From positions 1-64,000 of the forward strand of contig RDEW01000070.1 in the NCBI GenBank assembly GCA_011109175.1: a stretch of DNA of 64,000 nt, given 5' to 3'. This DNA is from Dicyema japonicum (lineage: Eukaryota > Animalia > Dicyemida). The translations under genes were made by a program, and so were the position numbers. Below are positions 16,796 through 64,000 of the stretch, in pieces (position 1 is the first letter of the stretch; every line of letters begins with the position of its first letter). The notes under the pieces were generated by a model. The model was not told the origin of the DNA. It saw only the letters and a list, made by a program, of their open reading frames with translations, and made no database searches.

Positions 16796-17661
16796 ATGAC
16801 TTTATTCTCGTGTGGATGTGAATTATTAATTATTTTTATGAGTCCTGTAATTCTACATCAAATGATATATACTAATTTCTTGATGAATCATTCAAATAAC
16901 TATATGAAGTCATGCTATCCTGTAGAATCAAGATCCATTGGTTGGAATGTAAAAAATGAATCATTTTTATTTGCGAATATAATCGTAAAATATAAAAAAG
17001 GGGATAATGTATTTTTACTTTAATTATTAGAAAATGAATTATATGTTGAATAAGGAAAATGCAAAATTACAAAGAATCTCATCACAAGATAAGATTGTTC
17101 TTGTTTTAATTTCACGAGATGTTAAAATATATTTCACATTTTGTTTAACGTCAGAAAAGATATATTACCCTGAGAAGATAGAGCTATCTATTTGTATTAC
17201 ACTTGTTCATTCTTAGATAATAATAATTACACGATTACACTCGATAAGCAAATTATTTATAAAACCAAAGATTATTACTGTCAAATGATTTATAAACTAT
17301 TTTCTGTGGATGTCTATCTCAAAATTTCATGTTTAAAAACCATAATAACCAATGGCGGAAAACCTAACAGATTTGGTAAAAATAGTTTTTATTTATTTTA
17401 GCGAAATTTTGTTCAAATTCGTCTGAAAATTTCTCTCCAAATATTAAGCATACTGAAATTGAATCTCAACCGTCTACTCAAGCGATAATTTCAAATATTA
17501 ATAATACTCCAATCAAAAGTAAGTCACCTAACCGAAAAGTGATAATCACCACTATTACTTTTTTCATATTTATTGCAATAATAATCATTGCCGGTGTTTA
17601 TTACAAGAGAAGGAGGGAAAGACCTATTCAACTTAGTAGAGATATATTACTTAAATTTTAA
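16796..17661 (+). CDS. LAMP-domain-like type I membrane protein, member A (intact)
   Basis: Introns at 17009-17030 (22 nt), 17194-17216 (23 nt) and 17376-17401 (26 nt) join three ORF-track fragments into one open frame. It has a hydrophobic N-terminus, W..KN....NI.VKY, KDYYCQ, an S/T/N-rich stalk, a TM segment (VIITTITFFIFIAIIIIAGVYY) and a basic short tail. The gene model is solid; the LAMP assignment is inference. Confidence 0.75.
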
Positions 17662-17739
17662 TATTTCATTTTAAATTTTTCATGGGTTTTTTTCCTAATT
17701 TTATCTTGTGCTTAATCTAAAATTGGACAATGTTAAAAT

Positions 17740-19060
17740 ATATTTGGAAACGAAATTTGTCTAATGTGCATGTGAATACTCGCTAATTGAATCAGGCTTG
17801 GAATTTTCTGGAGTTAGAATTTTCCAGACTGTTCATTGAAGGTCAGTAAGGGTTCTTCGATGTATCTGCGGTAGTGGATTTAACTAATGGAAAGGTTTGG
17901 TGGTAGGTCAAGCGATTGTTGATGATATTGTTAGCTCTTTATCTCAAAGTGGTCACCCAAAAACAGGATCTTTGACTCCCACTGTTAGTGGTGGGAGGCA
18001 ATTTAAACTTTCAATGCTCAATTTTGTACCTGCTGTAGTTTTTGTAAGCGGGAGAGCGATAAACCTCGAATCCAGTCTGGAGGGCATAATTCAGAGTCGT
18101 CCTGATGAATCGTTTTAAAAAAAGGTGATATACTTTTTTTTCTCGCCTATTCTAATGCCCAGCTAAAACTTGAAGGATATTGATTTTTGCTTTGCTTCAG
18201 TGCAAAATTGTTCTGAGTGTTTGTTAAAGCAGAGTTGTTAAACATGAGAATTTTTTCGATCTGGGGTAAATAGGGTTTTTGAAGTTTTCGACGTGGGTGG
18301 ATAGTCTCATCCAGTTTGATGGTTTGGACATTTTTTAGGTCATTTGGACATTTCTATTCTTGATGCAATTATAAGATCGTCGACGTAGGATAGAATAAAA
18401 CATTTTCTTAGTCATTGGAATGTAACTGAAGAGAAGATTAGAGTGAAGGGAAAAAACAGATCCCTGAGGAACTCAGTGTGGAGGTAACTAATCAGGACAC
18501 AGGGAAGTATAAACAAGTCCGACCTATTCGTCCAGAAAAAAATCGTGATCCAGGACAGCAAAACTGAGGATATTTGATGACACTCTTATTTTAGACACCA
18601 CATGAGAATTCGGTCAGCTACTTTTGCCAGGTCGATTGGAGCAAGAACAGTGTCACATGTATCGCTCGTGACGAATGGGCCACTAGTTACGTTTTTTGAA
18701 CTTGAAAAAGAAAATTGTTCCTGCACGTTCAATTCCTGGCTAGCCCTTGACGTCTGCTTGGAACACTGAAGCCGATGTGGTTGGATGGTCGACAGGAAAA
18801 CAATGCATACGCTCTCATGCAGACAGAGCGCCGGGAGATTCCCTTGTCACGCCATGTTAAACTCGACAGTTATCAGGGCTTCGAAGACGACGGGGTACTT
18901 GCCTAGTGGAACCCGTCGGTGTTGACAGAGGTGCTGGCAAGAGGCGGAGGTGTCTTGTCTGGGATTCAACTTAAACTTATAAATTAATTGAGAGATTAAA
19001 ATTAGTTGATGGTTCAAGGTTAGACAAACCACAGAAATGTAACAAGTCCCCATAGGTAAC
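17740..19060 (-). mobile_element. Degenerate LINE reverse transcriptase (Jockey/I-like)
   Basis: ILSYVDDLIIAS catalytic motif near 18370-18405, with a decayed PQG/SP.LF region upstream. Many frameshifts. Confidence 0.7.
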
Positions 19061-19124
19061 TGGTTGACACGTGAAGGTTAGTAAAATTGACGGTCGTAAA
19101 TTATTAACGTTCAAAAATCAAGAA

Positions 19125-19984
19125 TTAATTACTAATTAAAGGTATATCTGAAGTATCTTCTCTGTGATTTAAATTGACATATATCATCACAAAAATTCCA
19201 AAAAAGAATGAAAGTACAAATCCAGCAATGATGAACCCGAATCGACTCAAAGTGTTAGATCTGTTCATTATTTCGCGGATCCGTTCATTGGTTGAATATT
19301 TAATCACTTTCACGTCATTAATTTTGATATTCCTTCTATCCACAAAATTTTTGCGTGAAAGTTTAATTACTTTGGCATTTTTTCGGCTATTTTTATTTTT
19401 CACACGTAGACAGTGCAATTATCGTCTAATATTAATTTGAAATAAACCCTTCCCAGTAAAATTCTGAATTTTGTCATTTCTCAAAAATTGAAATTTAAAA
19501 TTCCTAATTCTAAGAAAAAAGGAAAATTTTTAAAGCTCAACTCGGGGCATTTACAATATCCATTCCGCTTATGAGTCATGTTAACATTACGGCTGAGATA
19601 AGTATCTAATTAGACTCAATTGCTTACGGTTATCTCTACCAATTGATATTTGAGACATTTTAGCTTTATTCTGATCAACTTCGACTTTGAAAGCTAATTG
19701 AAAGTGATTCATTTCAAAATGTACAAAGGAGGTATTCATTTCACTTATTGAACTAACTCGTACATTTTGCCAAATATTATAGATTTAGGCTAAAATTATA
19801 TTTTGCATACTTTTCCCGCTTCTAAATAAATCAGCGATATATTTCCTTCGAGAATTGCTCCAGCGAAATTGTTGTTTTTAAAAATCCATGTATGTGAAAC
19901 AAGTTGTTGAATATTAAAGAAGTTTAAGTAAATGAAGATATCTAAGAAATAAAATCAATCTGTCAAACTAGTTAACTGGTTCAT
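19125..19984 (-). CDS. LAMP-domain-like type I membrane protein, member B (three 1-nt frameshifts in this assembly)
   Basis: MNQLT|27-nt intron|NIFIYL..HTWIFKNNNFAGAILEGNISLIYLEAGK|intron|...SRNVNMTHKRNGYCKCPEL...FQFLRND..|intron|basic stalk, TM FGFIIAGFVLSFFFGIFVMIYV, tail NHREDTSDIPLISN. Confidence 0.65.
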
Positions 19985-20009
19985 TAGACATACTAATAAT
20001 AATAAAGCC

Positions 20010-20326
20010 TTTTCACGAGAGCCAAAGTATTTTATAGCTCCGCATAGGCAGGACACACACTTTATTTAAGTAAAGAACGGTTAATTTTAACTAATCGTAG
20101 AGGGAGAACCAAGGAATGCTCTTCACTTCTTTGTTTTTTTCTTTTTCATGTGTGTATGTCCTTTTGACTATCCAGTTCCGCAGTGAATCTCCACTGATGA
20201 CGGTTTCACTCGTCAAACACATTCCGCATCGTATGCGTGGAACCTATCAGCAGGTGAACAGCAGCGAGATTCGAACCCGTAGCCTAAGCCACTTAAGCCC
20301 GACACCTAACCACTAAGCCATCCGGC
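20010..20326 (-). mobile_element. tRNA-derived SINE, full length
   Basis: The reverse complement starts GCCGGATGGCTTAGTGGTTAGG..GGGTTCGAATCTC with canonical A and B boxes. The body aligns with 9781-10064. Further fragments lie at about 10-55 (+), 2095-2170 (-), 26830-26890 (+), 27070-27190 (-) and 37265-37385 (-). Confidence 0.85.
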
Positions 20327-20699
20327 TTAGACATACTATTTAAAAATTATTTAAATTTAAAATAATTCATATAAAATTTATTTAATTTTTTATTGATAAA
20401 AATTAATTATCGGTAATTTTACTAAATATGATTGCTAACTTACTTAAACAATTTTAGAAAATACTGAATTTTCTCGTTCATGCAAAATCTTAACTTACTT
20501 TAACTAATTTTAAAAATACAGAATTTTCTCGTTCATGCCAAATCTAATTTATACGAAAGATCTGAAGAAAGAGTGAAGATTACAGCATCGCTTTTTCATT
20601 TGCTTTGACCCATATTTACACTGTTCTATTTTGAACGATCCGAGTAGCATTATTCGCATTTTCGAGCTCTTATCTCAAGGGCTTTTGACACAGTAAACA

Positions 20700-21460
20700 G
20701 AAGCAAGCTGATGAAGGTTATCGAAAAGATGCCAATCAAAAATCCATTTAATAAGCATGTTGGTGGACGACACCCGCCACGCAATCAAACTGTTAATGCA
20801 AACCAGAGAAATTCACTATTTACAAAGACATCAAGAAAATAGAGTTCTACAAAATTTATTCTCCGAATAGTTTTTATATATACATACCTGAAAAAACCGA
20901 ATAAAAATATGACACGAAAGATGAGACTGTCGGAATGTAAGAAACTGGAAATTTAAGTTACTCAGATCCTGTCTAACGACAAACCTACAAGAGCAGAAAC
21001 GCGTCTGAGAGTCCACAATGTTTTCGCAGTCCCAATTCTAATATATATTGCAACCACATGGGGATTATCAAATAATGACTTATTAAAATCTACTCTTTCG
21101 GCAGAAGTAAAATACGGGTGGTCATTGGTGGTCAATGGCCAAAAAGACCACCAACCGAACAATTACAAGATCAAGAAACTGTCCCAAATAATCATCAAAA
21201 AATCTATGGATACCTATCGGACACATACTACACCGCAACCCTACAACTCCAGCGAATATGCAATGGAAGTATATTTCACGAAAAAAACCCCAAAATTCAA
21301 GGGCAGGCAAGAATAACTCTCCCTGTTGTCCTTAACGCTGACCTAACAAAATCAATAGTAAACTCCTCACACAGATCTCGACAACCTACGAAAAAGGCAC
21401 GGAACAGAGAGCCTGAAAGAAATTAGTTGTCCAGATCTGTCAGGTGGACAAAAAATCATT
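20700..21460 (+). mobile_element. RTE-like LINE, RT C-terminal fragment
   Basis: NVFAVPILIY.ATTW, then AMEVYF...FKGR.RITLPVVLNADL and DLDNLRKKARNR. Frameshifted. Confidence 0.6.
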
Positions 21461-22423
21461 TCTCAAACAGTGCTTTTAATAATACTAATAAACTCACTCT
21501 AGACAACCATTATGAAAACTCTCGTCTGAGAATGAAGTGATGTCAGTAGAGTATAAAAACGAATAATGAAAAATCTTTCGTAGTGGATTGATTATTTCTT
21601 CAGGTGTTTTCGAAGTTGCTACTTAAACTACTGTCAACTTAGAAAACGAGATGATGACTGCATCATAATCTATGATGTCTCTTCAAGCACTATGGTATCT
21701 GAAAGAAGGATGAAAACGACAAGGAAGAGATCAAAGAGTGGTGCAATGGAAAGTTCCGGTCTGCTAAGAGTTATTGAAAGCTGGAGGATGACTAACCAAA
21801 GAGCTGTTGAAAGATATTCCTTGGAAGAAGACTGAAATACCTTGACCTCTTTATTGATGAGTTTATGGAACATACGAAAACACACAAGCAAAGACAAGCG
21901 CTCTGCTTGCGTAAGAATCTGAATCTGAAAATATCAAATTATTTTATACTCAAGAATTTCCAAAATTTTTCTAAAGCTAATGGTATCTCTTAAGTGCAAC
22001 CAAATTTACTAAAAATCTGTAATTATGTGTTTATAGTAAACAAATTACGTGAACCATCATATAAACTTCATATCTCTCAAATAATAATATTTGGGAAGTC
22101 GACGATATCTAGATTCCACTGCTCTCTCTAGATCTTAAAAAAATATCCGCAGATTTTATAATTTCGTATTATTTCTTATTTATATCCCGACAATGTACAG
22201 AGTCTCGTAAATACAGTGATCCAAAAGGTATTGTCTGGAAGATTGAAATAGAAGCCTAACTCATCGCCAAAGAACGAAATATTCTTTCGGTGAAATGAAG
22301 GAATTGATCTTTTTTAATTTCTCATGAGTTAGATGGATCCGATGAGGCCACTAAAGGTAAGAAAAGAATCTTTGATTAAGTAGCCTATAGTACCACATGA
22401 CACAAGAAGGTCAATCGAATATT

Positions 22424-22810
22424 TTATTTAACTCTTTTTTTTTCGAATTTTTTAATTTTATTTAAATAACATTTATTTAAATAAAAAGCACTTAATTTTA
22501 GGGAGCTTGCATGCCAATGCTGATTACTCTGACAATAGCTATCAATACGCTCTCGAAGCCATACAGTCTCATGTGGATTCCTGGTGATCGTCTGCTTGTG
22601 GGCAAGGATTTCTGACTTCTTACAGCAATAGGACAAACAAGTGACCTCCGAAATACTACATTACTTCTTTCTCTTATGATTCTCGGCTTCCTTGAAACAT
22701 GACCTGGGTCCGAAACTGAAGAGACAAAATTTTGGAGATAATGTATCAACGTAGCATCCCAAATCAGGTTCCGACTATTAACAAAAGAGAATGTTGTCAT
22801 CCCATCGGAA
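22424..22810 (-). mobile_element. CRE-clade retrotransposon 3' end, degenerate
   Basis: RNLIWDATLI..Y..NFVSSVSDPGH and ..HETVWLRERIDS, paralogous to 2322-2770. AT-rich tail. Confidence 0.75.
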
Positions 22811-27261: not shown

Positions 27262-28413
27262 TTATTCTATCTCTATCAGTGGTATGCTACTGGTGAATGA
27301 TTCCAACTGAGATTTTGATTTTGTATAAAAATTCACTACGACTCCTATTACTAGCAGTCCTATAACTCCGCATACGATTCCAATTATTAGATGTTCCCGC
27401 CAATTTTTCGAGGTTGATTTTTTAAACATCCTTCGTCTAAATTTCAATTTGTTAAATACCATTCCGATAAATCCAAAATTCAAATCATTGCGAAAAAGTT
27501 GTAATTTAAAGGACGAAATTTCGATCGACAATCCATCAGAGTAGTTTTGTGAAATTATTCTGCAATGATAGTAATTGCCAAGTTTAATCTTTTTGAAAGT
27601 ATGCTCTATTTCAGAACATTGATCTTTTTTTTTATTTGCAACACAAAAATAATAAATCTGATATTCATCTTCTGAAATTTCTGCGGCAAAATCTATTCTG
27701 AAATTCTTACCCTTCAACGAATATACATTTTCATATTTGTGCAAATTATATTTATTATTATCGAATAACTCATCCACAATCTAAGGATCAACGCACACGT
27801 GTACAATATTGTTATCATCAATATATGATATTTTGATTTTCCCACTCAGTGCTCCTAGGATTCTATTATTCCCAACGAAAAACCAAATTAGTTTATTTGG
27901 GTTACAGTCATTCGCTAAGTAAATTTTAATAGAAACCTATAAAATGCTTCAAATATTTATGATTATTATTGTAGAATTGTAACGTCATAAAATAGATTAT
28001 GAATGAATAATTATTCGAAAAACTGATAGGAGTATTTCCACAGCGGTAGTACTCAACATATTTGGTTTCAGGATCGTTATGTTTTCATTATAACTAATAT
28101 TATCTTAGATAAACTAAGAATCTTACAATGAACCATTTCTATTTCTATTTCAACAGTAAAAGATTCTTCCTTAAATTTTGGAAAAAATATAAGTTTTAAG
28201 GTAGTATTGTCAAAACAAGGGGAAAGTATTAGCCCCTGTTTCGCTTGATGTAGATCTCCATAAAAATAAATTTTTTTCATCTATAATAAACAAAATATAG
28301 ACTTTTTCATGACTACAGTCTAGATATGCATAAAATAATAGCCACCATTCAGATTTCAATTTGACGATTTTGTTGAACAACAAGAATACGATAAAATGTT
28401 TAATCAGGTTCAT
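27262..28413 (-). CDS. LAMP-domain-like type I membrane protein, member C, with two tandem domains (LAMP1/2-like architecture); one 1-nt frameshift
   Basis: Signal-like N-terminus and 22-24 nt introns. Domain 1 ends ..EYYRCGNTPISFSNNYSFIIYFMTLQFY. Domain 2 reads LIWFFVGNNRILGALSGKIKISYIDDNNI|intron|...LGNYYHCRIISQNYSDGLSIEISSFKLQLFRNDLNFG, then TM LIIGIVCGVIGLLVIGVVVNFY and tail ..SSIPLIEIE. G.YY.C..(x~15)..L+.Q.F resembles the LAMP GxSYxC..LQxQAF motif. Confidence 0.65.
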
Positions 28414-28569: not shown

Positions 28570-30790
28570 GATTTGCTATCACAGCTCACTCTATGGTTTC
28601 CAGCAACTAGAACACTGGCCGTTTTCTTTATTCTTATTATTTATTGATTTAATTACACCTAAATCACGAAAAAGAGGATAAAAGTTATCGTCTAATAAAG
28701 TGATCCCGGTGTCCATACCAGTCCTTTTCCTGCAATTAGCATTGAAGTCCTGGATTAATCTCCACAGACAGTTCTTCAGGAACGAAAAAACCATTAGGTT
28801 TAATAGATCTTGCACGGACCTTGTCGCCTTCTCGATTCGTCGTTGTTTCACCGCAACCATAAAATTATCTGCATACGATGAAAGAATTGTTTTTTTAGTG
28901 TTTGGGGATGGTAGGTAACTGAGGAACATGTGTAAGAGCATTGATGATATTCGTTTTTGCTGTAAGGATCTTCGGGATACTGAGTCAAATGCCTTCTCTA
29001 CATTCACCGAGACCAGCACTGTTCTCTCGTGTGGATTTGGAGTATTCAGGCCGTCCGAATGAATTGAACCAGTTTTGTTAGATGAATTGTTGTTGAGTGT
29101 CCTTCGCGGAATCCGTGTAGAAAAGATGGTAGAGTTATGAAAAGACGGATCTTGAGAAGGACCAGTTTCTAACACAGATAAGGCGCAGATGATGGATACC
29201 GGGCGGTAGAAGGACGGACAGTTTGGTGGTTTGTTTTTCTTCATGATAGGGTATATCAGAGATTTATTCATATTAACAGAATCTTGTCCTCGTTTATTGA
29301 GAGGTTGAAACTTTGTGTTATTGCGGCCGTCGCGGAAGTAGCAGTTCGAGAATGGAGATGTCATCTGAAACGCGGGACGACGAGTTTTTCATTTTCCTGA
29401 TTACTGATTGCACCATCGAAGGGTCGAAAAAAAGTCATGTTGGAACATTTATTCTTTCGACCATTTCCAGAACGAACATTCTGGTCTTTTAAATATGGTT
29501 TATGACTAATTTCACATAGTACTTCATAACGTCATTGGGATTTGGACATGGCTCTCGATGTCTAATTAAATGTAGAGAGCACTATCGATTTCCATAATAC
29601 CCCTTATCGGGCCTCAATGGGGAAGTATTCTTCGTAGCTTTTCTGAGCAAGGCTTCCCAACGTTCTGTGATGTTACGCGAGATTTATTTGTTGTGTTTTG
29701 TGATGTTCCGCGTGATTTCTTTGTTCAGTTTTGATATCCTTTCAGTTATGTCCACTGATTGTCTTTCGAAATTCTTCACTTTGTTTTTCGTTGGATTAGA
29801 TCTTGCGTTTCAGCATCAATTGGGTGTGATGGACGTAGGACCACCCATCGGAATGTATCTTTTGCAAGCTCGGAGTATAATCTCTTTGAGGTATTTGACA
29901 GCAGCGTCGATAGATCCGAAGTTCTCTATCCGGAAGGCCTGAAGGTTTAGTTCGATCAAATGTGTGAAGGTGGGCCCTATTGCCTTTGAGAAGTTCACAT
30001 TGGTTCTCGGAGTTCACATTCATTAACCTATGTTTTGTGGAATCCTCATGAAATCGGGTTCGATGTGAGGTATGAAAACCTCATATTTATCCAGTTGTTT
30101 GTCAGCATACCATTGAGAACTTATCGCATTTAGGTCACCACCAATTAGCGTGTTTTCCAACCTGGTGAATCGTGTGAGTTCGGGGCTGTAGCTGTTGGGG
30201 CATGAAGGTGGAGTGGTATGCACATATTGACAACTGACAATCGGTGAGAGGGTAGGCATAATCTCAGAGTTAGATGTTCCAGTGTGTCATCTTGGCGGGA
30301 GGGGTCCAGGATGTCGTCCGAAATATTTCTGGCAATTATATGATTCCTGATTTGAGTAATAATGCTCCTCCTATATCCATGACCTCTCTCTCGTCTGACA
30401 ACAAAGTATTCGAAAAGTTAGGGTTGATCGCCGTGGGTTAAGTTTCGTCTCTTGGAAGAGAACTATATTTACTGAGTGTTCTATGAGAAAACGTTGTAGT
30501 TTGGCGATTTTTCTTTGGATACCATTGATGTTAATTTGTAATATGACTAGATCTGGTCCAGGATGTTCATTGACATCTCCACAGGAAAGGAGTAGGATTC
30601 GACACCATCCGCCATGGTTGCGGGATAGGGAGTTTGCGACTCTTCCAAAACTTCAAGTGAGCGATGCCACCACGTAGGCGAGTCACACGGCATGAAATCC
30701 AAACACTTGTCTATTCTTGAATTATATGTGATATTGAGAAGTCTCAGTGCTTCGGCGACCGTGGGAACTAAATACATTTAATTACTTGTA
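28570..30790 (-). mobile_element. Degenerate LINE (APE endonuclease plus RT, Jockey/I-like)
   Basis: LIGGDLNAISSQW (endonuclease), KPPNCPSFYRPVS..C, VEKAFDSV and ILSSYADNF (RT). Many frameshifts. Confidence 0.8.
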
Positions 30791-31789
30791 TCTATTTGCT
30801 TTTTTTATGTATCAGACCTCATAGAATCTCAACACATAGAAACGCTTTAAGACAGTTTTTAGATGTCTACCCTGTCTGCATGATTTGTCTCAACTTGAAA
30901 TGTGATGTGTACACATTCAGCTAGATTCTCATGCTCTAAATACAGCGAGATAACTAATCAACTAATCAGGCGACGGTATAGCTAAAAGCGGATAATATCG
31001 AAACTCTGTATAGTAGATAGTTGGGATTATCGTTATTTCTACAGAGATTGCAACACAATTTTCTTTTCCCATTTGTCTGTCGTCTCGAAGAATGCTGAAA
31101 GTGTCCTACTATTTTTAATCAAACAGTACCATTTTCTGAATCTCAACTACGACCCACTTATTTATTGCTGATCGATTAAATAATAAACCTCCAAAAACAA
31201 TTGTTGAATTTTAGATATCAACAAAGCTATTAACCTGACATCGAGACAAGTTCTGAGCAGTAAACTTACCTAAAAATATCGCGTAACAATGAAATTGCAG
31301 TAGCTTACTGTCCCCTTTCTGGTCACCTTGGTCGTTTTTTATAATGCCTACCTACTCTCATTATTGATACCTTGCAAGCGGTGTCCCTGAAGGTTCGGTA
31401 CTATCTCCAGGATTGTTTAATCTCCATCTAAGTAATGTCGAATTGAGATATAAAAAACAATTAGAGACTTGAACAATTATAAAAAAATAATAAAAATAAT
31501 TAAAAAAAATTTGAATTAATATAGCACATTCTTTATATATTGATTGTGGTGCATGTCTCGTGAAAGAGAAAATGTATTATTTATTTGGAAGCAAAAAATG
31601 ATATTGAATGGGTTGATGTAGAAGCAAAAGTAAAATTAATAAAGCAATTGGATTCGAAGATATAAACGTCGACCATTTATTTGATAAATTTGTAAATGTT
31701 AAATCGTTTTTCTCAACAAAAACTATGAAATGGAAAATTATTTATATCCTTCGTGTTACTCCAGGACTCTTTCTAACTCGCTACATACT

Positions 31790-32295
31790 TGCGTGTTAGT
31801 CGCAGACATTAAATAATTTAAATCTAGTCCAATCTCTCAAAGAATTCCCTGGCACAGACCCCCATGGAGCAGAGCTCTCGGTTGTTCGAGCATGCATCTT
31901 CAGCTCATCGATAAAAAGAAGGTGATTTGTATTGAAACAAACTCCCTCACAATCAACTGGTATTTGCTCAAATCGGTCATTATGGCGGGGACTCAAACAG
32001 AGAACAAAGAGCAGCGGAGACATGCTAGGATCCCCCTCTTGAGTTTTACCTCGCCTATCCGCTTCCTATTATAGTTCAGATGAATACTCCACCTATTCAT
32101 CACAGCCACTACAAAGCTGATGAACCACACAGGCATACACAGACTTTGTAGGCACTTGACAAGGTAAGAATGATCAACTGAATCGTAAGCCTTCTTCACA
32201 TTCACCCACATAGACAAAAGTGAGTTTTCGTGAGACTCAGAAGGATTCTCAGATCTTTCAAAGTAATACTGGCGTATAGATGCATCAGTCCACAT
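31790..32295 (-). mobile_element. R4/NeSL-like non-LTR RT fragment
   Basis: WVNVKKAYDSVDHSYL, IGEVKLKRGIL, MSPLLFVLCLSP and NHLLFIDELKMHA. Confidence 0.75.
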
Positions 32296-32344
32296 ATAAG
32301 TAGTGTGAATGACGTAATGATACTGTCGAAGTAATTAAGCATTC

Positions 32345-33299
32345 AACCAATACACATATCCACAATTTGAGACGATTCGCGTCCATCACAATACTATTGT
32401 TATATATTTGAAAAAAGAATCCATTTATGTTAATTTAAAAAGCACGTGTTAATAGCGTTAGAGCTACACTGTTTCAAATATCACTCAGAAATCTTCCTGG
32501 TAATAATTTATTGTAATTTAGACGTGTTTGTATCTCGAAATGTTAATGTGACTCACAATAATGGTGAATATTGTAAATGCAAAGAACTAAGCATTAAAAA
32601 TCAGACAAATTTTCTCATAATTAACGAGTTAAAATTTCAATTTCCGAATCTCTTAAAACAAAGTAAAATTTATCAACAATACTTTGGCATGATAATAAAT
32701 TGTCGTCCTTATAACGGTGTATTTGCACGTTTTGTTCGATAGTGAGTCTTTAAATTGACCAATAGAATCACAACGATGCATGCTACTCGAATTAAGCTTT
32801 AGTGATTTGATTTTCAGTAATTTTTTTTCAAAATTTTTAAAAAGTTCTGGCAAATTTCCACTAAAATTAGAATGTTTTTTTTTAAAAATGGCAAATCTGA
32901 GATTTGGCAAATTTAAGAGAGTTTACTATACATCTATCAACGTTTGCAAAATATCATTTGCATATGCTATCAACGTTTGCAAAATACGAATAACCAAAAA
33001 AGACTACCAAAGTAACTAAACATACAACCGATACTGAGAAAATTAAGAATGGCAAAAAATGACTACCAAAGAGACTAAATATACAACCAATAAATCTGTA
33101 AAATTATTAATAACGAAAAAAAAACTACAAAGTAATTAAACTCATTACAGCAAATTTGTATCCTTTAATAATTCGAGGCGATTTGCGCCTGTCATTGCTG
33201 GATTCGTTATATCGACCATTTTTTGCATTCTTGTCCTTATTTATATCAATTTCAATCATAGAAGAGATTTGTTCAGACATACCTTTAATTATTAACTAA
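32345..33299 (+). pseudogene. LAMP-domain-like family member D, 5' end missing (abuts the RT fragment), frameshifted
   Basis: FVSRNVNVTHNNGEYCKCKEL...LKFQF and C-terminus SRRFAPVIAGFVISTIFCILVLIYINFNHR..SDIPLIIN align with member B. The stalk has internal duplications. Confidence 0.6.
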
Positions 33300-34049: not shown

Positions 34050-35620
34050 TTGGACAAGGCATCGGCTCAAACTTTTAGATATTTCGATAGTATATGAAAC
34101 AGGAGGCAGCTCTGTAGACTGGCCGCCTTTAGTTATGTCCAAGGACATAAGTGTTGTCCTTTGATATGGTTCGGGGGAGTTAAATCTTTCCGCAATTAAT
34201 TTTGTGAGGGTTGTGAGGTGTGCTGTGGTCGAATGGTTACCCGGAATCCGTGCGGTATTGAGATTGAATCTTGTACTTTTTCAACCAAGCCTTTGAAGGA
34301 TCCTTGAAACAGGACTCAGAATAGATATTAAGGATTAAATACTTCTTCCATATTTCAGGGATTGCATTGGTGTTAATTGATAGGTTGAAGATATAGGCTG
34401 ATAGTTTCAGGACTCGATGGCCTAGGTGCTTCAGTTCACATGGGCTTCTGAGTTGTTAACTTTGGATATGGCTCTGCGGACATCTGTCTATTAAAGAGGA
34501 TCAAGTCATCGGAGCGTTTCGGTTCAATTTTTTCAGGAATACTTGGTGTTCTTTTGAAAACTTTTTGTAGGAGATAGACGTGTAATATTTTATCAGGCTG
34601 TCGAGTTTGATGTAGAGTTCGCCTTTTCTATCTAGAGAAGATCTTTTGATGTTCTTGATCCACTTCCAGACTCTCTGCATTGGGTTCCTGTAGAGAGCAG
34701 CTTTCGATAGTCTCGTCCATCTATTTACATTTTCTGCCTTTATGTTCTTGTCGATCTCTCTGTTCAGTTCATCGCAAGGGTGTAATTAATTATCGTCTGA
34801 GAGTGTCCTTTCATCCGTGACCTAGTTTTGACCTCCAAAAATATTGGATTGTGGTCACTCCTGGTGTCATATTTCACTGAGCAGTCAATAAGAAGGGCCA
34901 GGAATGGAGAAGACAGTGATATGTCAATGGATGAGGGTTTATCGTTACTTCGAGTAGGTGTTCTTGTATAGAAATCCGGATCGCTGAGTGTGTAAAGACT
35001 GTGAAGGTCCTTAATTAGTATTTTCCCTCTTTTGTCATGGACTTGACCTGTCACCCACAATGGGTGCTTCGCATTGAAGCCATCACAGATAATCACATCC
35101 CTCAGTGATGTGAAGGAGTCAATCTGAGAGCACAGGAAGAGCTGGAACTCAGGTGGGAGATATCCGTTGATTAAAATTATGAAAGTCTTGGGAATCGGAC
35201 TTTGGTACCCACAAGTTCGAGATTTCCACAGTCGTAAGCATACTGTGGACACTGTCAGTTATATCCTCAAACGGAATACCGTTGCGAATTACTGTGAGAA
35301 TGTCCCCACCAAGGTTCCCAGGTCTGTCAAGACGAATTACTGTGAATCCAGGAAATAATTGTGTAGAATTCATGGGGGAAAGTTTAGAATCTTGAATTGA
35401 CAACACATCGATGCAATGTTCTTCAAAAACTTCAGAAGTTCGAGTACCTTTTCTTGATTCCATTTATATTGAGTTGGACTATTCTGGATGGTCCAGAATT
35501 TGCCTCAACGTCTCCGCAACGACACAGGCCTTCTTTATTGTCCACTCGTAAGGATAGGAGAAACAGTGGCTCTTTTCTTCCAAATGCTACTACGTCGTCG
35601 GGGAGCCACGTGACATTTTT
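34050..35620 (-). mobile_element. Degenerate LINE, APE endonuclease region (Jockey/I-like)
   Basis: IDVLSIQDSKL, VIRLDRPGNLGG, VIICDGFNAKHPLW, SSIDISLSS and SDHNPI are APE motifs. Confidence 0.85.
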
Positions 35621-54025: not shown

Positions 54026-54098
54026 CAGTAATCAATACTAAAATATTTTTATTATCAATAAAAGTTATATTTATTGGAAATGAAAAAAGTGAGACATA

Positions 54099-55170: not shown

Positions 55171-58114
55171 ACTCAACCAACATAAAACATTATTAGAATC
55201 ACTTTAACCAATACACACACGTGTGGTGTACATCGTTGATTAAAATTTAACACTATTTGGAGAATTGAGGTTTTCAAATTTCTTCTATCTTGGGGATCTG
55301 GCCACGTGATTCATATCGTCAAATTAATCTCCAAAATCACATTTTAATGATAATATAAAAAATCAAAATTTCTACCTCTTCTTCAAGAACCCACGTGGTT
55401 GCTTGAATTAACTGGCGATGAAATTACCAGCGATGTAATTACCAGCGATGTATCTTACAGCTACGACCTAGAACCGGCTTACAATCTTGGGTAAGCCAAG
55501 CACAAACAGTCACAGCTAATTGATCCAAGGAAGGAAAATAAGGGAGAACGTATGCTTATGCCTACCAAATGCATCTTCCAATAGTCCATTGCAGGCTTCT
55601 ACTTCAGAATAGAGGTGAAGAAGTAGGTTTGCCCTTTTCCATTTTTATCATAAGTCCAACCGTCGCGGACATTACGTCATCATTTAGTAGGAGAGTTTTC
55701 ATAATGGATAATCTTCACCAGTGGATTTTGCTCATGGAAGGTAGGAAGATCCCTTCAACAACTGTGTCGTGCCAGAAGGACTCGCCGTCTCACGGGTGGG
55801 ATCTGTTTTGACGAGAATTGACCTTCGCTGAAAACTCCATCTTTTGGATTTGAACCCATGTCATGTCCGATATCATTTATTCACTCCGGGTCCCTTCGAC
55901 TAAAAGAAACCTGTGGCTAACAAAAACGTTGCAGTTATGAGCGGACGCTCCTAGAGACCTGACAGGTATATTTGGTTCTGTAGAAAATTAGGAGGTGGAC
56001 ACGGACAAGAGAAGAAATGACCGGTCTTTTGTCATCAAGAAAGCACGATAGGCATAGTGGAGAAGACGATTGTCCAATGGTGTACAGATATGAATGTTTT
56101 TTAAGTGATAACCACAACTTAGGCGCGCCAAGTGGAAACGAACTTTCCGCAGTAGGGAAGCTTGTAAAATCCGAATTTGATCACCAGGAGTAGGAATAAT
56201 TTTTTTGAGACCCAAAAGCAGTGAGTTGGATGTCCTAGCGTTTTACACTTGTCAAGGAATTTGATATCATCAGACTCAGAAAGCCTAAAGGAAATTTTGG
56301 AACTACTGACTTTTTTGGGGTTTGCCCGGCACTCGTTACACTGTGTCGAATCTTTATATCACGTTATTAATGTAAGTCTTAAGGAAAATCGTCTCACGTC
56401 GGTGGATCAATTTTTTAATTATTTATTCTGGACAGACGGCTCATTAGAGTATAACCTAACAAGTTAGCAGTCAAAATGAAATGAAAAATTCCAAAGACCA
56501 CGGTTTCAACTAACTAACCCATACCTTGAGTTGATTTAAAAGTTTTTTTCACTGACTCTCTCTACTGAAGTAACGTAGTCATGCTTCGTCGTTGATCGAA
56601 AAATCACGGAGAAAGAGCAAGAATTACGTCTTTTATCATAGAGAACAAATTGTAGACATAAATCGTTGAAGAATTGAAAATTTTAACTTTGAACTTAATC
56701 GAAGATTACTTTACAAAAATTTTGGTTCTGGAACATCTGCTGATCTAACAGAGAATTACAAATCTGGTTGAGTCAAACATAAAAATGGCAGATATCGAAA
56801 ATGCATTAGCTTTTGTCGGAAACTAGTTTCATAAAACGATCAAGTACTCATCAAATTAAAAGTTCCCAAGGTGTGATTGGCTCTTAATTTTTTTCTAAAA
56901 AGTTCGCTTGTCTACATGATTTAATATTCACTGACATGCTTAGAATTGTTAATGGAGAATATTTCCATGAAATTGGGTTTTTCACTGATATTCCCCCAAG
57001 TGTGATATTCCAGTCACCAAAGGACATTCAGCTTACATGTATGTGGGCTTGACCAAATGTATCAATACAATGCAGTTTATGTGAATGCAGTTAGTTTTTT
57101 CTCTAAGATTCATATGAGAACAGCATACGCTAAAGAACAGCGTCTTTAATAAATCTCTCAATACAGTAAATGGAGATGGCTTATATGCTCTATGGATCGA
57201 GGTCACAAACTCATTTGAATCTGCCGATCACGACTTTTTAATTAGAATGCTTGTAAAGCCCGACATCCTTAAATGAATTTTTTTAATCAAAGAATGCTTT
57301 TCTCTAAGACATATTTCAAATAATAAAAATAATTTTAAAATTCAAAATCAGAGGGAGATTTTTCAAAGAGATTGTCTTTCTCCTAGTTACTCTTAAGAAA
57401 TTCCAGGAAATATTTTCGAAATGCAGTGGGAGTACTGACATACCACCAGAGGAAGGCTCGGCGGTTACTATAAGCTTTAATCGCTTAATTAGTTGTTTTT
57501 AGCATTAAGCATATTTTACTTATTGGTCGATAGCTCAATGAATCCTTCACCATTACGATAATTGAAAATTCAAATCGTGTGGGAACTATTCAAATTTTAA
57601 AATAATACCAAACAAACTTCAGAGACCCCAAAAGAAGCTTTCTGGTGCCACTTTATAGATTTCCATTTACAATGGGTTTATATATTTGGAATTTTAGTAG
57701 AAGGTGTTGTAAAATGTCATTTTTAGATATAAAGCTTTTTATACGTTAATTTGCGCATTTTTTGATAATTAGGAAAGAAAAGAGAACAAATGGTCATATA
57801 GAGGCTGCCGTGACTGCGTGGCTATTCCCTCTCCGGATGGTGAGCGAGATTGCTCAAATAACCGGCAGCGCTCACGAAGGTCTCCTAATCTTGTGGAAGA
57901 TCTCCTGACCTTTTGTTGGTTATGTCCCTTATAGACAATCCGGTACCGCAGTGAGATGTTCAATTTCAGTGCAGTAGATTTTCCTTCTGACAGCTTTAAT
58001 CCTTGGAGACTGCAAGAGTCTCTTATCTCTTCCATATAAACACTGAACCACATGAGACAACATGAAAAATAAAATCACGAATTTATTATTAATTATTTTA
58101 TTTTATTTCAGAAA

Positions 58115-58973
58115 TTAATGATTTATTTGAATTAAATAATCTCGCTGTTTTTTCTTATTCAAAAAATAAATAGTAGCAAAAATGGCAATCCCAATAAGCA
58201 AACACGTAAATATAGGAATCAAGATAGCTCGAAGATTCAACGAAGTTTTATGTGGAATAATCGAATGAGACGTACTCGAGGCGGTAGTTTTCAGTTTAGT
58301 CGATTTTTCTTCCAAAATGGTCTTAGTATGTGGAGAACTGGGTAATTTTTTGCCTATTAATTATTATAAATATTTACGCTTTCTGATAAAATCCATAATT
58401 GTGTCGTTGCGGAAAAATTGTGCTTTCAATTTGGTAAATTCAACATAAGTATTGTGCTGGAAATCAATCCTTTGTTTGTCACGACTATAATAATTTCCAA
58501 TTTCAGAAATCATATTAACACTCTGTGTGTACAAAGCAATAATTCCTAAAAGAAACTCTAAAGCGCTACCCTTGCTAGATTCAAATTGTATACTCATTTG
58601 ATATATTTGGAATGTATTTCCGACTAAATTGACATCAATATAGAGAGAATAATAGCCACTCGTCAAATAGCAGACACACAGATTTTTCGAATTGTTCAAT
58701 AACTGTAAAGTAGCCTCGTTAAACTGAATGTAACAAGCTACTAATATATATGTATGGTTACTTTATTGTTTCGCCAAAATGATAAAGTTATTATGCCGCT
58801 AAGAACTGCATAAGACTTTATGGTCGATCTGCAAAATCCACATTGGCACAGGAGAATTGTGAATTTGCATTGTATCTATCCTTATTTCTGTAATTTCTCT
58901 TATAGATATGACTATAATTAAAGATGGTGCTAAAATCAAGTGTCATCAATTAACCTAAATACTGTAGCATCAT
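58115..58973 (-). CDS. LAMP-domain-like type I membrane protein, member E (two frameshifts; may be a pseudogene)
   Basis: MWILQIDHKVL..VLSGIITLSFWRNNK|intron|...SEIGNYYSRDKQRIDFQHNTYVEFTKLKAQFFRND..|24-nt intron|S/T-rich stalk, TM AILIPIFTCLLIGIAIFATIYFL, tail KKKQRDYLIQINH. Confidence 0.65.
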
Positions 58974-59069
58974 TTATTCGAACAATGTGAATAAACTATT
59001 TTAAATATAATATTTTAATTTAATTTATAAAATCTTTATTTTAATAAATTAAAAAAATCGTTATTTTAA

Positions 59070-59500
59070 AAAATGAAACAAATTGAATATTTTTGGGAAT
59101 ATGGGGGATCAAACAGTCATATTAGGAAAAATAAACTCCTACCACAGAAATCAGCTCCGGTCGCTGACGAAAATCAGGATTCCAAAAAGATTTGTATAAA
59201 AATGATGTACGGAAAATTGAATTCACAGTCGATCGAATTGACTGTCAAAAAAGAGAGATAGAAGTTATTTGGACATATCCTAAAATGGACCAAGCAGTTC
59301 CGACAAACAATGCTATGGAAGCTTACTTCCAGATTAGTTCTGGATACCACGAACGTCCTGGCTACTATCTCACTATTGCAATTCACGATCTTGGGATTGT
59401 AAAGACGAAACTCGAAAATGCAGACGACCTAGATGTCCTTCGAAAAATCGCCTTCTGAAGGAGAGGGTAGAGGCATCTAACATCGAAGATTATCTACGGT
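59070..59500 (+). mobile_element. RTE-like LINE 3' fragment
   Basis: KMDQAVPTNNAMEAYFQ...RPG..LT..IHDLG..KTKLENADDLDVLRKIA. Confidence 0.6.
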
Positions 59501-60160
59501 GTTGCGAAAAGCCATGATGAGATAACTTTCTTTTAGTTGTGTTTTCCAAAATAATAATTTTTTTACAGGATAGTATATTTTTTTAAACAAATATTTGTCA
59601 AAAAACCTCCTTGAATTTTCAAGAAAAGAGATAGACCTTGTATGCAGTGTGATACCATCTCTCGAGTCCATAGAGGAGTGATGGAATAATCGTACGTGAA
59701 AAAATCAAATAAAAATAATTCAGTTTTGAGTTTCCTCATACATGAGATCGCATGGTGTGTTATACTCCTTTGGACCATAAAGTCGTATAACGTACTGCCA
59801 GTTATCTTGATTACAATCATCATGTTTATTTTCTTATTCAATAAGGATATTTTGATTTGGGTTTGATGACAGATTATCTTCGATGTTTTTATGCTTCTCC
59901 GTTCACGAATGATGTCAAGGATTATTAAAGCAGCACAATTAAAACTATAGTAAAACTATAATAGCTACAGCTTATTAAAAATGTTAATTCTGATGAAGTA
60001 ACTAAGATGCATATGAAAGATACAATTACGATTGAAATCAGCATATTTGTTGTAAAATAATTTTCAACTAATTTTTAAAATCGAGTTTGCCCACAATAAA
60101 GTTAAAATTCGTAAAATTATTTTTTTGAAAGATAATTGTAATTTGAGTTCAATTTAGCTA

Positions 60161-60912
60161 CCGTATTTGCCGGTGTATAAATCGACCTCGACTTATACAG
60201 AGTCATGAAATTCAATTTAGTATTCATCGCTTCAAATGTGATGGTAATCACTACACTCTTCACAAAGAAATTCTTGCAAGATCAATCTAATTATAGAAGT
60301 GAATGGTATAAATTGATAACTACGTAAACATTCAATCATTATACTTACCCATGTCTAAACAAATGAAATACTCTGCGAAGTTTGTACTGCAATTTGTAAA
60401 CTTTCAAAAAAAACAAACAACTGTGCTTCTGAAAGTTTGGCGTAAATGAGAAACTAGTTAATGATTGGAAATGCAATGCAACACAGCTAGCAGTGATGCC
60501 AAGAAACAAATGTGCTAATAGAGGGAAAAGCTGCCAGAGGCCAGCACTTGAACAAGAACGTGCATGCTGAGTCAAGGAGCAACGAAAGTGTGGGTTCGTC
60601 ACACCAGAAATATGATTCGTCTGCGAGATTTGGATTGTGCCAAACAAAGCAAGATTACTGATTTCAAAGTAACTATTAGTGATGTTCACGATTTTTAAAG
60701 TGAAATGACCTTGTGCTACGACAAAGAACTAAACTTGCTCAGAAACTGCCTAAGATTTAGAGGAAAACATAACTCTTAATTTAATTTATTGTTTTTAACT
60801 AAAAATAAATCACTTTCTAAGAGTGTTCATTGTTGTTAGTCTCTCTTGGCGCGTAGTATCACAGGGTACAAAGTAAATACAAGGGGGTCGACTAATACAC
60901 CGGCAAATACGG
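60161..60912 (+). mobile_element. Non-autonomous pogo/Tigger-type (Tc1/mariner) DNA transposon
   Basis: TIRs CCGTATTTGCCGGTGTAT.A.TCGACC (60161-) and GGTCGACTAATACACCGGCAAATACGG (-60912), each flanked by TA. The internal KFGVNEKLVNDWK..LAVMPRNKCANRG..P.LE..VKEQR is a pogo DNA-binding region. Confidence 0.9.
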
Positions 60913-61298
60913 TATGTCTTCATGCAAAGGTATACGTGACACATTGCATTGGGGAATATTGTAAATGTGATGAATCACTATGATGAATAACAAATAATTT
61001 CTTAGAATAGAGAATTGTAAAATTCAAGTTCTAAAAAACGATGAAACAAAAAAGATCACTGGGAAATGTTTACTTTAACCTATCTGGGACGATGAATGTG
61101 ACTGTTTACCTTTGGGTTACCAAATAGAACATCAATCAAAGCTTATAATATGAAACACAAATATGTCGTCAAAAAGCTAAATCTGACAACTACTGACAAT
61201 TTCATTTCTTTCATAATAATATGTGGGTTAGGAATTTCTAGTTTATTTGATATCAAGTATCTAAGGCTGCATTTATGTTCTGTCTGTCTAGTTAACCT

Positions 61299-61840
61299 AA
61301 CGAGTAGGAGAGCGTGAGGTAGTGTAGAAATCATGCATGTGGGTACTAATGGAGGTGTTCTCTAGTGGAGATCTTGATGATAATAACAAATACTCGAATG
61401 AGAACTTTGAGAGCCTATGCGGAAAAGGGTTTCTTGTGAACATTAGTTTGACATGAGTTATTAGGTCCTAAGCACGTTTAAAGTTATTTGAAATTGCTGT
61501 TTGAGGGAAAGAGAATTGGGTTAACATTTTCGAACCTGAGCTGGCTGGTTATGCGGAGAGGCTTTCGTTATAGTGTAAGAAGAGAGGCATTTCGGAAAGA
61601 GTTACTTTTCATTTAAGGTCGATTTTTCTAGAAATGGTTTAGCCAGCGAGATAGAAGTTGTTGGTCATAAAACCTTATCAGAAAGCATGGCAGTTTCTCC
61701 TATTCCGAACCATGTCGGTCGTTTCATGAAACCCATAGTGGTTTAACAGTCACTTGACTACCAATAATGGCAGCAATCTCCAAGGTTAGCAACTAATAGA
61801 TAATCGTGATCAGGGAAGTCGGCTAAATATATTAGAACTT
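61299..61840 (+). pseudogene. Decayed large-subunit (28S) rRNA fragment
   Basis: Colinear matches to conserved LSU blocks: ACGAGTAGGAG, GATCTTGATGATAATAACAAATA (canonical GATCTTGGTGGTAGTAGCAAATA), GAGAACTTTGA..GG.AAAGGGTT.C.TGTGAACA, TCTCCAAGGT and GGGAAGTCGGC. No flanking rDNA is visible. Confidence 0.75.
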
Positions 61841-62559
61841 TAGTAGATCAATAGAATGCAAACCTCGTGGTAAAGTACAAGAAGATGTTAAGCAAGCAAA
61901 AGATGGTTACTCTGGGAAAAAATGGAGTAAGTCAACAAAAAAAACGGTAATCAAAATGCTTTGTATGCTCCAGAGAATTCCACATGTCCAGCATCGGAAT
62001 GACCAAGAATATACTAAGCTATTATTTCATACTGGCAATGCCAATCATGTCTCTCTCTTGAATGAACGACTCTCTTAACTCAACGTTTTCCCTCCGATAA
62101 TATTCTTTAGATTATCCAATTCTTATTGAGCTGATCTCGAACCTGACTTATTCTCGAATACCGCTTATTAGGATCGCTTATTAGGATCCCGTGTTTGTTC
62201 AGATTATCACTTGTTTTGAAAAATCTATATTCACCGATAACCTTGAAGACAGGATATGCCTACTGTGCTTCGCCTCATGTACACTTAGTATATCCTATAG
62301 CGAAGGATAGAGAAATCAATCACATCCGGAGAATAAAAAATCATCAATAAGTTTTCTTTTAAGGGCATTAGAGTTTACATAAATGAACATGAACAACAGA
62401 AAAAAGTATATAAGAAAGAATCATTGAAGATGCCAGAGATGCGTCGATTGTGGGGCATAATACTCTCCAAATTGTCAGAAGGTGGAATCTGTTCGCCTAT
62501 GAGGATTCTCTTGATAGAACTGTATCCTGGAAACATCAGAAGAGAGTCAAAAGTTTCTC

Positions 62560-62915
62560 TTCAAATGAACCGACCCCCCCCCCAAGCGAACAAAGTATCC
62601 ACCATTCCATAGGACAAACGCCTAGTTTATTTGCATCTGTAGCGGACATAATAAGGGAATACTTTCCTTCGTTCTAAGCAGCAGGAGGAGTTGATGGACT
62701 TCGTCCCGAATATTTCAAGGACCTCATTTATAATAAAACAGGTAGCTCTGGCAACCGACTTGTCTCAACAATCACCAAACTAATGAACAGAATGCTCTCC
62801 TGGAAAATGCCAGAAACAATTCGCTACATCGTGTCCTCTGCCAAATAACTTTTGGTTAGAAGGAGGAGTCCAACCCATTCTGGTAGGTTCTGTTTTCAGT
62901 CGCTTAGCGTCAAAA
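62560..62915 (+). mobile_element. CRE-clade RT N-terminal fragment
   Basis: AAGGVDGLRPEYFKDL...TKLMNRML...GGVQPILVGSVFSRLASK. Confidence 0.75.
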
Positions 62916-63810
62916 CTACCGGGCAGGACAGTTCTCCCCGTCCTTTTCGAACACCTGATGAAGGTTGTGAAGAGATAATTCATGTTGTGTGGACGTTTGC
63001 ATGTAATCCTGTAGAATTGCTAGTCTTACTCAGTGATCGAAAGTGATGGATAATTTTTTAGAGGTCGTATTATATGTCGCCCATATAAAATTATGTTTTG
63101 TTGGACGCTAAAAATATCTATATACTAAAAAACTAGTTTTTCTGTCTGTCCAGAAAAGTTGACCAGTTTAGCACTTTGATCTATATAATAAAATACTAAA
63201 TTGACAGCGAACACAACACATTCTAATAACTAAAAAACAAATAACCTTTTTCCACTAAAATTAATAAGCGAAGTGAACTGGGCAGCATAATATTTCCTCA
63301 GGAGCTGGCGGCTGTCAGCTAGCGAACAGCACAGCCACCTCTTATAAATATAATGAATTTTTTTAACACAAAAATTAAGTAAAGTTAAACTTTGAGAGAC
63401 AGTCTAAATACAATAGGTAATGAAATAATAAGCTGAACTATTCCATTGACTCTTTCATCACTCACTCAACTCTTAGGCAGATTCCTTAGAAAGAAAGCCT
63501 TTTATTTCTTAACCATATTCTACCTTAGTGGTATCAATTGTTTTCTGGTCCTTATTCAACTTTGTTTCGAACCTTATACGGAGGGAAAACTTTATAGTGA
63601 ATAGCCTGAATTTTACATAAAAGATAATTATAAGCATTACAGTAATTTAGTTAAATATTTTGTAAAATTACTGGTAAAATTACTTTTTTTTTAATGAGAA
63701 TTAAAATCACAATTATATTAGTTCAAAGATGAAAACGAATTTAATTAAAAAAATAAATAAATAAATATTTAATTTTATTAAATTAAATTTAATAAATTCT
63801 TAATATAAAT

Positions 63811-64000
63811 ATGAATCATTTAATAGGTCAGGTCATATTTAATTTCTTTTTAGTTCTTTTCATCAGCTTAATCGTCTTAGAAGAGGATGTGATTACTTGG
63901 GAAATAAAAAACTCTTGGAATTATACTATAGCATTGATTGAGGGTCATATATTTTTAAAACATTATTCAAATGGAACTGTAAGCAAAATTTTATTTTTAG
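63811..64000 (+). CDS. LAMP-domain-like family member F, 5' part (continues beyond window)
   Basis: MNHLIG..FFLVLFISLIVLEEDVITWEIKNSWNYTIALIEGHIFLKHYSNGT, then a 22-nt intron (63979-64000) at the same position and phase as in members A, B, C and E. Confidence 0.65.
   Translation, partial: MNHLIGQVIFNFFLVLFISLIVLEEDVITWEIKNSWNYTIALIEGHIFLKHYSNGTVSKILFL

Follow-up and report, generated by a model that had tools for sequence, protein, structure and literature searches.

The Dicyema japonicum sequence considered here, a window of 64,000 nucleotides (nt; positions 1 to 64,000 of contig RDEW01000070.1), carries six loci, called A to F below, that are probably copies of a very large family derived from LAMP genes, the products of which are predicted to be delivered to the cell surface as a coat; we give this reading a probability of about 0.72. 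As the preliminary description of the window had proposed, all six loci are present at their coordinates and on their strands, which is confirmed by locus reading, three-frame translation and splicing, and its core reading, a lineage-specific radiation of LAMP-fold type I proteins without the GYxxPhi tail (Phi being a hydrophobic residue), is supported by fold, Pfam, ancestry and selection. D. japonicum is a parasite of the octopus kidney, and dicyemids feed by endocytosis across their outer cells only. The window is AT-rich (GC about 0.33), and its genes are interrupted by introns of about 20-38 nt. The loci were translated in three frames and then modelled with our own dynamic-programming splicer; the query in database searches, Pfam scans and folding was a single exon or an uninterrupted open reading frame (ORF), while the joined spliced models served for frame reading and for one local tblastn search of a relative's model against the window only. 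The assembly searched comprises 67,542,437 bases in 377 pieces. The six loci are the following.

16796..17661, plus strand: gene A, A-type, apparently intact; spliced four-exon model of 264 amino acids (aa)
19125..19984, minus strand: locus B, pseudogene of the B/D subfamily, read by comparison with its relative L080 and with relatives on contig C157
27262..28413, minus strand: locus C, two-domain, of the largest (C-type) subfamily, damaged; compared with L003, L016 and L024
32345..33299, plus strand: locus D, 5'-truncated pseudogene of the B/D subfamily, from translation and a B/D ORF match
58115..58973, minus strand: locus E, E-type, from translation, splicing and paralogue comparison
63811-63978, plus strand: first exon of locus F, followed by a 22-nt phase-0 intron (63979-64000) that ends at the window edge
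64001-64364, plus strand: main exon of F (121 aa), beyond the window, followed by a phase-1 intron and an LNCDW exon

The predicted fold speaks for LAMP in two subfamilies. When AlphaFold models were compared with 48,161 representative PDB chains, LAMP-1/2/3 and Ac45, the luminal domain of which is LAMP-like, were retrieved first for both, so that the LAMP fold proposed earlier is borne out. For the main exon of C (mean predicted local distance difference test, pLDDT, 70.3) the top five matches are Ac45 (Z 5.2), LAMP-2 (5.0), LAMP1 (4.8), LAMP-3 (4.8) and again Ac45 (4.6); for the A-type ORF L062:1136-1549 (pLDDT 69.1, predicted template modelling score 0.67) the top six are LAMP-3 (4akm, 7.9), LAMP-2 (7.7), LAMP-1 (6.9), LAMP1 (6.8) and Ac45 (6.6 and 6.5), with 102-109 residues aligned, and the next row falls to Z 4.9. 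Sequence identity in these structural alignments is 7-15%. Moreover, Foldseek against the PDB ranks LAMP-3 first for the A-type model (probability 1.00, E 0.027), and LAMP-3 and LAMP-2 give the best TM-scores for the C model.

As for sequence profiles, three alignments were built, namely A1 from main-family exons, A2 from the A-type subfamily and A3 from the exons encoding the transmembrane (TM) helix and tail. Here the LAMP assignment does not extend to formal Pfam membership: PF01299 (Lamp2-like_luminal), run exon by exon against the whole genome, gives only six weak, sub-threshold matches (E 0.03-0.7), all of them loci on the A1 match list, while no window exon reaches threshold. Since the family DNA makes up a very small fraction of the genome, it is not by chance that all six matches fall on it. 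The second model, PF21222 (Lamp2_2nd, the LAMP TM segment and tail), has no match to the TM exons of the window, and outside the six loci it matches only four places in the genome, with 27.1 bits as the best score (cut-off 27). They are LAMP genes of canonical appearance, two of which lie in tandem, at the following positions.

C1:1194600-1197300: L085
C279:430400-431000: L086
C1:1440500-1441300: L087

By hmmscan, all four of their TM exons score best with PF21222 (E 5e-6 to 1e-3), and one luminal exon scores best with PF01299 (E 0.018). Common to the genes are a mucin region rich in Thr, a single LAMP-type domain and a first-strand exon (W..VNVNY) such as PTWVVKNNGTVSVIFSAFVNVNY; the main exon ends LKAQFFRSDNSTEFMGDG (LKAQFFRSD..FMGDG), and then come a Cys and the TM helix. 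The tails (NYEPLI, SYEEVN, SYEELN and NYQEI) all bear Y-x-x-hydrophobic at the C-terminus or two residues from it. The expanded family is linked to these genes by an hhalign match of A1 to one canonical-looking main exon (probability 96.6%, E 6.5e-10, 94 columns), and the exon of E matches a canonical-looking gene by BLASTP at E 3e-8. The four genes are probably of the ancestral type that stands behind the expanded family. On three independent lines, namely the weak PF01299 matches, the predicted structures and the link to the canonical-looking genes, the family appears to be LAMP-derived and of LAMP fold, a view supported by these models, yet it lies outside the formal definition by Pfam and by tail.

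That the six loci align with each other beyond chance, as was claimed before, is upheld by an iterated hidden Markov model (HMM) and by the comparison of subfamily profiles, although the 171-aa ORF of C used alone in a genome search finds none of A, B, D, E or F. A first HMM, made from 28 main exons of other contigs and searched against 1,939 ORFs from this part of the contig, matches C (4.6e-35), E (1.1e-8), the paralogue of E and B (1.3e-4), with A, F and D among the next-best rows and F at 0.5 before iteration. After four rounds (3,716 ORFs) the values are 2.5e-31 for C, 7.6e-26 for E, 8.6e-6 for B (its FKFQFLRND piece), 4.7e-4 for D and 1.5e-13 for F, which was itself already inside the profile by the last round; A is marginal, with 0.04 and 0.15 on two consecutive colinear exons. 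The ORF of D matches B at E 3.6e-12, and hhalign of A2 against A1 gives a probability of 95.9% (E 5.3e-9, 92 columns). Judged from these profile matches of C, E, F, B and D together with the A2-A1 match, the six loci form one superfamily in five subfamilies, namely A, B/D, C, E and F, with identity between subfamilies of 13-22%. In a reading of the sequences, one Cys stands before the W strand (NDC in C) and another in mid-domain; the Y-x-C motif and the Cys right after the phase-1 intron are found in A, B, C, D and F, and both are lost in E and its paralogue.

Several results weigh against the reading given at the outset. A Pfam scan of eight exon translations of the window returned no LAMP model and only weak, TM-driven noise, and PF01299 scores nowhere in the genome above 19.3 bits, the cut-off being 27.2. 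Profile A1 finds no LAMP among PDB sequences and no relatives among 1.84 billion representative proteins, and a canonical-type main exon finds only chance antibody matches in the PDB sequences (E 0.04). The Foldseek E-values fall short of significance and the Z values are moderate; besides, the folded pieces reach a pLDDT of only about 70 and are without the first-strand exon; in keeping with the lack of this exon, the alignment with LAMP covers the two thirds of the domain towards the C-terminus. The family is known here from genomic sequence alone, and the plasma-membrane localisation is a prediction made from the tails only. Finally, much of the family may be dead, because damage affects five of the six copies in the window and the ratio of nonsynonymous to synonymous substitution rates (dN/dS) in young pairs is near 1.

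The first of these results also bear on the origin of the domain, which might be an independent beta-sandwich or beta-prism, or derived from Ac45, so that only a shared strand arrangement would underlie the likeness to LAMP. The moderate Z scores, the tie of Ac45 with the LAMPs for the C model and the lack of any significant sequence match to LAMP in the PDB or in the 1.84 billion proteins would all be expected from it, and the language-model search leans weakly to F5/8 type C domains, since one query in the ESM Atlas leads to such clusters at 0.83 (a second query gave no match). Yet Atlas scores below 0.9 count as leads only, and no F5/8 type C structure is among the top-50 fold matches shown, and the F5/8 type C identity was thus rejected. 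Moreover, the Ac45 model PF05827 (VAS1_LD) matches nothing in the genome at E up to 10, which is weak evidence as control genomes are equally empty, whereas PF01299 matches six family members, and genes matched by the family profile have YxxPhi tails and a TM segment of the Pfam LAMP type. An origin outside LAMP is accordingly very improbable in our judgement. A word-index protein search with the 171-aa ORF of C found no match.

Turning to its size, the family is indeed expanded, as had been suggested, but not to six members: the profile search finds at least 150 copies genome-wide. The A1 search gives at least 151 matches, with E below 1e-7 for all those listed, of which about 100 are stop-free; as 150 of 340 first-look candidates were scored, the copy count is a lower bound. 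With the 171-aa ORF of C alone, 141 stretches of the genome are matched, grouped by hand into about 110 places. The A-type exons (exons 2 and 3 of A) match about 30 places in addition to the A1 matches, and the other subfamilies are smaller, with 10 matches for E-type, five for F-type and about five for B/D-type. The copies are clustered, for example on C1, C112, C317, C326 and C335, and the contig under study has at least 10 members between 16.8 and 131 kb. As published (PMC6736024), the D. japonicum genome measures 67.5 Mb in 377 scaffolds; repeats make up 49% of it, and 5,012 genes are predicted.

Some of these copies have features of their own. The F-type loci L040 (C344:83007-86336), L042 (C344:80457-83687) and L043 (C319:6859-10101) and the window at 63600-63810 share long, near-identical 5' flanks and first exons, and such flanks across two contigs indicate a recent segmental duplication; L042 also has a C-type domain piece, KLKLFRNDLNFRYIESG, downstream. 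In several A-type copies, for example L062:1136-1891:+ (C1:206435-207190), the micro-introns have lengths in multiples of three and are stop-free, and thus a single long ORF (up to 252 aa) is read with or without splicing. The loci L034, L035 and L038 (C1:846-848 kb, C355:12-14 kb and C374:140-142 kb) form a two-domain subfamily with the strongest PF01299 matches, still below threshold; the tails of L034 and L035 retain the tyrosine (MEYIPIF and MEYLPVF), and the subfamily is possibly intermediate between the canonical genes and the C-type.

Estimates of dN/dS by the Nei-Gojobori method, made on main exons and with small counts, separate older from younger pairs. For older pairs dN/dS is 0.33 and 0.34 (A against a relative), 0.32 (L034/L035) and 0.57 (L002/L024), while for young pairs it is 1.0 (E against its neighbour), 0.86, 1.02 and 1.96 (three C-type pairs) and 0.89 (C against L002), which fits purifying selection over time along with relaxed or diversifying evolution in recent duplicates. 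The proposal of birth-and-death evolution is thereby strengthened, with values of about 0.3-0.6 for older pairs, about 1 for young pairs, and many broken copies.

The same values raise the question of how much of the family is alive, for segmental or tandem duplications of a LAMP-derived gene, in a genome rich in repeats, might have left mostly relics with no adaptive role. The state of the window is what such a history would leave: only A looks intact, B, C, D and E have stops or frame breaks, and F is without a TM helix. Stops outside the expected introns in many genome matches, the young pairs with dN/dS about 1 (E and its neighbour included), the repeats making up 49% of the genome (PMC6736024) and the LINE (long interspersed nuclear element) fragments that adjoin several copies point in the same direction. 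However, not only A but also several of its A-type relatives are intact, about 100 of the listed main-exon matches are stop-free, the older pairs with dN/dS of 0.3-0.6 are under purifying selection, and gene structure and intron phases are retained across subfamilies sharing less than 25% identity. We consider it rather unlikely that the family is mainly such a collection of relics. At the other extreme, it is doubtful, and in our view quite unlikely, that Dicyema has turned a protein normally lining the lysosome into its outer coat, with more than 150 LAMP-fold glycoproteins that have lost the tyrosine delivered to the surface of the peripheral cells towards the host urine and diversifying rapidly (dN/dS at or above 1 in young copies), either as a glycocalyx that is variable and resists proteases or as an array that captures ligands for endocytic feeding.

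For the delivery to the surface, the preferred reading depends on the tails. Those of the window end SSIPLIEIE, DIPLISN, RDILLKF and DYLIQINH, and none has GYxxPhi, as had been noticed; the loss is not a simple one, however, since in A3 read by eye the tyrosine is seen to be replaced. This alignment contains canonical tails (-NYEPLI and others), a subfamily with -EYIPIF or -EYLPVF, and the C and B/D types with -SSIPLI, -GSIPLI and -SDIPLI. By eye, -YEPLI lines up with -SIPLI/-DIPLI and with -EYIPIF, whereas the aligner itself offsets the canonical tails by a few columns; so read, the C and B/D tails seem to have retained the Pro-Leu-Ile end, with the tyrosine replaced. The tails of A and E are basic and unrelated. 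Mammalian LAMP-1 with its tail tyrosine mutated goes to the cell surface, and from this behaviour we infer that intact members of the family would reside mainly at the plasma membrane or at early endocytic membranes.

Put together, the family would be specific to D. japonicum and derived from an animal LAMP gene. A complete gene product would begin with a signal peptide, after which come beta-prism domains of LAMP fold, one or two in number, that bear N-glycosylation sequons and a LAMP-like cysteine pair (YxC with the Cys just after the phase-1 intron); a short stalk would lead to the single TM helix, and the cytosolic tail would measure 10-18 residues. In the expanded family the tyrosine of this tail is swapped (SIPLI, DIPLI), or the tail is altogether different and basic. 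Intact members would then go mainly to the plasma membrane and the endocytic membranes of the peripheral cells, and there may form a glycoprotein coat facing the host urine, while the gene set would turn over by tandem duplication and decay.

Among known proteins, vertebrate LAMP-1 and LAMP-2, which have two luminal domains, a TM helix and a GYxxPhi tail (PF01299 and PF21222), share with the family the type I topology, a predicted beta-prism luminal domain, one TM helix, a short tail, two tandem domains (in the C-type), many N-glycosylation sequons and, as it appears from the sequences, a Cys just past the Y-x-C motif with a second shortly before the membrane. They differ in that the Dicyema family numbers at least 150 copies rather than a few, with Pfam scores under threshold, a tail with the tyrosine replaced or unrelated, no vertebrate-type proline-rich hinge between domains, and genes with 20-38 nt introns. 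The single membrane-proximal LAMP domain with a Ser/Thr-rich, mucin-like stretch before or after it, as in LAMP-3/DC-LAMP, CD68 and LAMP5/BAD-LAMP, recurs in A, B, D, E and the four canonical-looking genes, and among structures the A-type model matches LAMP-3 best; unlike these proteins, the window members have a stalk between domain and TM helix and no YxxPhi. ATP6AP1/Ac45 also has a LAMP-like beta-prism beside a TM helix and scores equal to the LAMPs for the C model, but it has a large extra N-terminal region and another tail, and PF05827 is silent in the genome. In behaviour, the family resembles parasite surface-protein families and the micro-exon genes of schistosomes, which have hundreds of clustered, fast-diverging copies, many of them pseudogenes, and stalks whose length comes from small phase-matched exons; the likeness is an analogy, and the Dicyema fold is unrelated to theirs.

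LAMP genes are usually few in an animal genome, yet D. japonicum, with only about 5,000 predicted genes in all, bears at least 150 LAMP-derived copies, clustered and in subfamilies less than 25% identical. Standard annotation would miss such a family because no exon is at the Pfam threshold and there are no relatives in public protein sets. LAMP or lysosomal membrane proteins are unmentioned in the D. japonicum genome paper (PMC6736024) and in the stage-expression paper; literature searches on Dicyema and LAMP and on LAMP family expansions found nothing relevant. The family offers a natural series of LAMP-fold sequences far beyond the known diversity. Moreover, as feeding is by endocytosis only, expanded endolysosomal-type glycoproteins with altered tails bear directly on the contact between parasite and host.

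At the level of gene models, the features thought to be common to the six loci are found in most but not all of them. A phase-0 intron follows the W..L.G.I.L.Y exon in A, B, C (domain 2), E and F, D being without exon 1; the phase-1 intron before the Cys/stalk exon is observed in A, E and F, and in B is deduced from its relative L080; one TM helix is present in A to E, whereas for F none was found within about 1.2 kb downstream. The two tandem domains of C hold on comparison with its relatives. Pseudogenised members had also been recognised, but the damage reaches five of the six copies and had been seen only in part. It is unlikely that the frame breaks are assembly errors, because B, C and D have several each. 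Where the splicer bridged over the codon-10 stop of B, exon 2 of B, the YYRCG of C and the W motif of E, paralogue comparison shows the bridges to be artefacts.

Gene A, with six NxS/T sequons counted in the spliced model, has a hydrophobic N-terminus, GWNVKNESFLFANIIVKY ending at the phase-0 intron, DYYC, ISCL, the phase-1 intron and FCSNSS, followed by a Ser/Thr/Asn/Pro stalk, one TM helix and the basic tail KRRRERPIQLSRDILLKF. Its parts (plus strand) and those of B (minus strand) are:

16796-17008, 17031-17193, 17217-17375 and 17402-17661, plus strand: exons of A
17009-17030 (22 nt, phase 0), 17194-17216 (23 nt, phase 1) and 17376-17401 (26 nt, phase 1), plus strand: introns of A
19811-19984, minus strand: exon 1 of B, with an in-frame TGA at codon 10 (19955-19957)
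19790-19810 (21 nt), 19606-19627 (22 nt) and 19426-19447 (22 nt), minus strand: introns of B
near 19760 (exon 2) and near 19520 (between YCKC and FKFQFLRND), minus strand: frame breaks of B
19125-19262, minus strand: TM helix and DIPLISN tail of B

In C, the YYRCG...LQFYNNN of domain 1 is not in frame with the upstream YNISYNENITILK, with a break near 28060 relative to L003 and L024, and the conserved Cys codon and the TM helix fall in different frames. The 171-aa ORF (27262-27777) was rejected as the true product, for it reads through a canonical-looking 23-nt intron and skips the conserved Cys. The parts of C, all on the minus strand, are:

27937..28103, minus strand: second exon of domain 1 (HMM match, E 2.6e-12)
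27805..27914, minus strand: first-strand exon of domain 2, ANDCNPNKLIWFFVGNNRILGALSGKIKISY (first-exon HMM, E 6.5e-11)
27781-27804, minus strand: phase-0 intron (24 nt), containing CACGTG
27460..27780, minus strand: main exon of domain 2, GNYYHC ... KLQLFRNDLNFGFIGM, the piece used for AlphaFold
27437..27459, minus strand: 23-nt intron-like stretch GTATTT...TTTAG, 1 nt shorter on the donor side than in L016 (frames read by eye)
27262..27436, minus strand: Cys codon (DEGC, out of frame), TM helix and SSIPLIEIE tail (translation and alignment A3)

The phase-0 intron of C begins GTACACGTGTGC and hence includes the CACGTG palindrome; its sequence is shared by C-type paralogues (L007, L008, L023 and others), in which read-through gives VHVCIDS, VHVGIDS or VNVCIDS.

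For D, a local tblastn with the relative's model found no match to exon 1 in the upstream 30500-32300 (about 1.8 kb). The E paralogue at C344:70941-71285, 12 kb off, is 89% identical to E over the main exon and has a continuous W exon, and the F-type copies elsewhere in the genome look degenerate. The parts of D and E are:

32412-32498, plus strand: exon-2 remnant of D, split over two frames
32500-32521, plus strand: intron of D (22 nt)
from 32522, plus strand: exon 3 of D, GEYCKC...KFQF, then IINC without an intron
near 33160-33270, plus strand: TM helix of D, with the DIPLIIN tail in another frame
58955-58973, minus strand: exon of E, followed by an intron at 58930-58954 (25 nt)
58762-58929, minus strand: W exon of E, with a frame break near 58815
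58724-58761 (38 nt, phase 0) and 58354-58377 (24 nt, phase 1), minus strand: introns of E
58378-58723, minus strand: main exon of E
58115-58353, minus strand: stalk, TM and tail exon of E

Scattered through the genome, about 30 places have 50-68% identity to residues 66-102 of the D ORF (32630-32739, plus strand) over some 30 aa, and most of them lie in ORFs shorter than 60 aa; the stretch may be a stalk module used in common or a small dispersed repeat. Elsewhere in the window, the ORFs of 293-311 aa on both strands at 10140-11091 were discarded as artefacts of a run of N (an assembly gap, approximately 10205-11050). Between family members D and E, at 34764-35252 on the minus strand, lies a LINE fragment, with a 162-aa ORF that matches the Pfam family Exo_endo_phos_2 (endonuclease-reverse transcriptase, E 7.5e-11).

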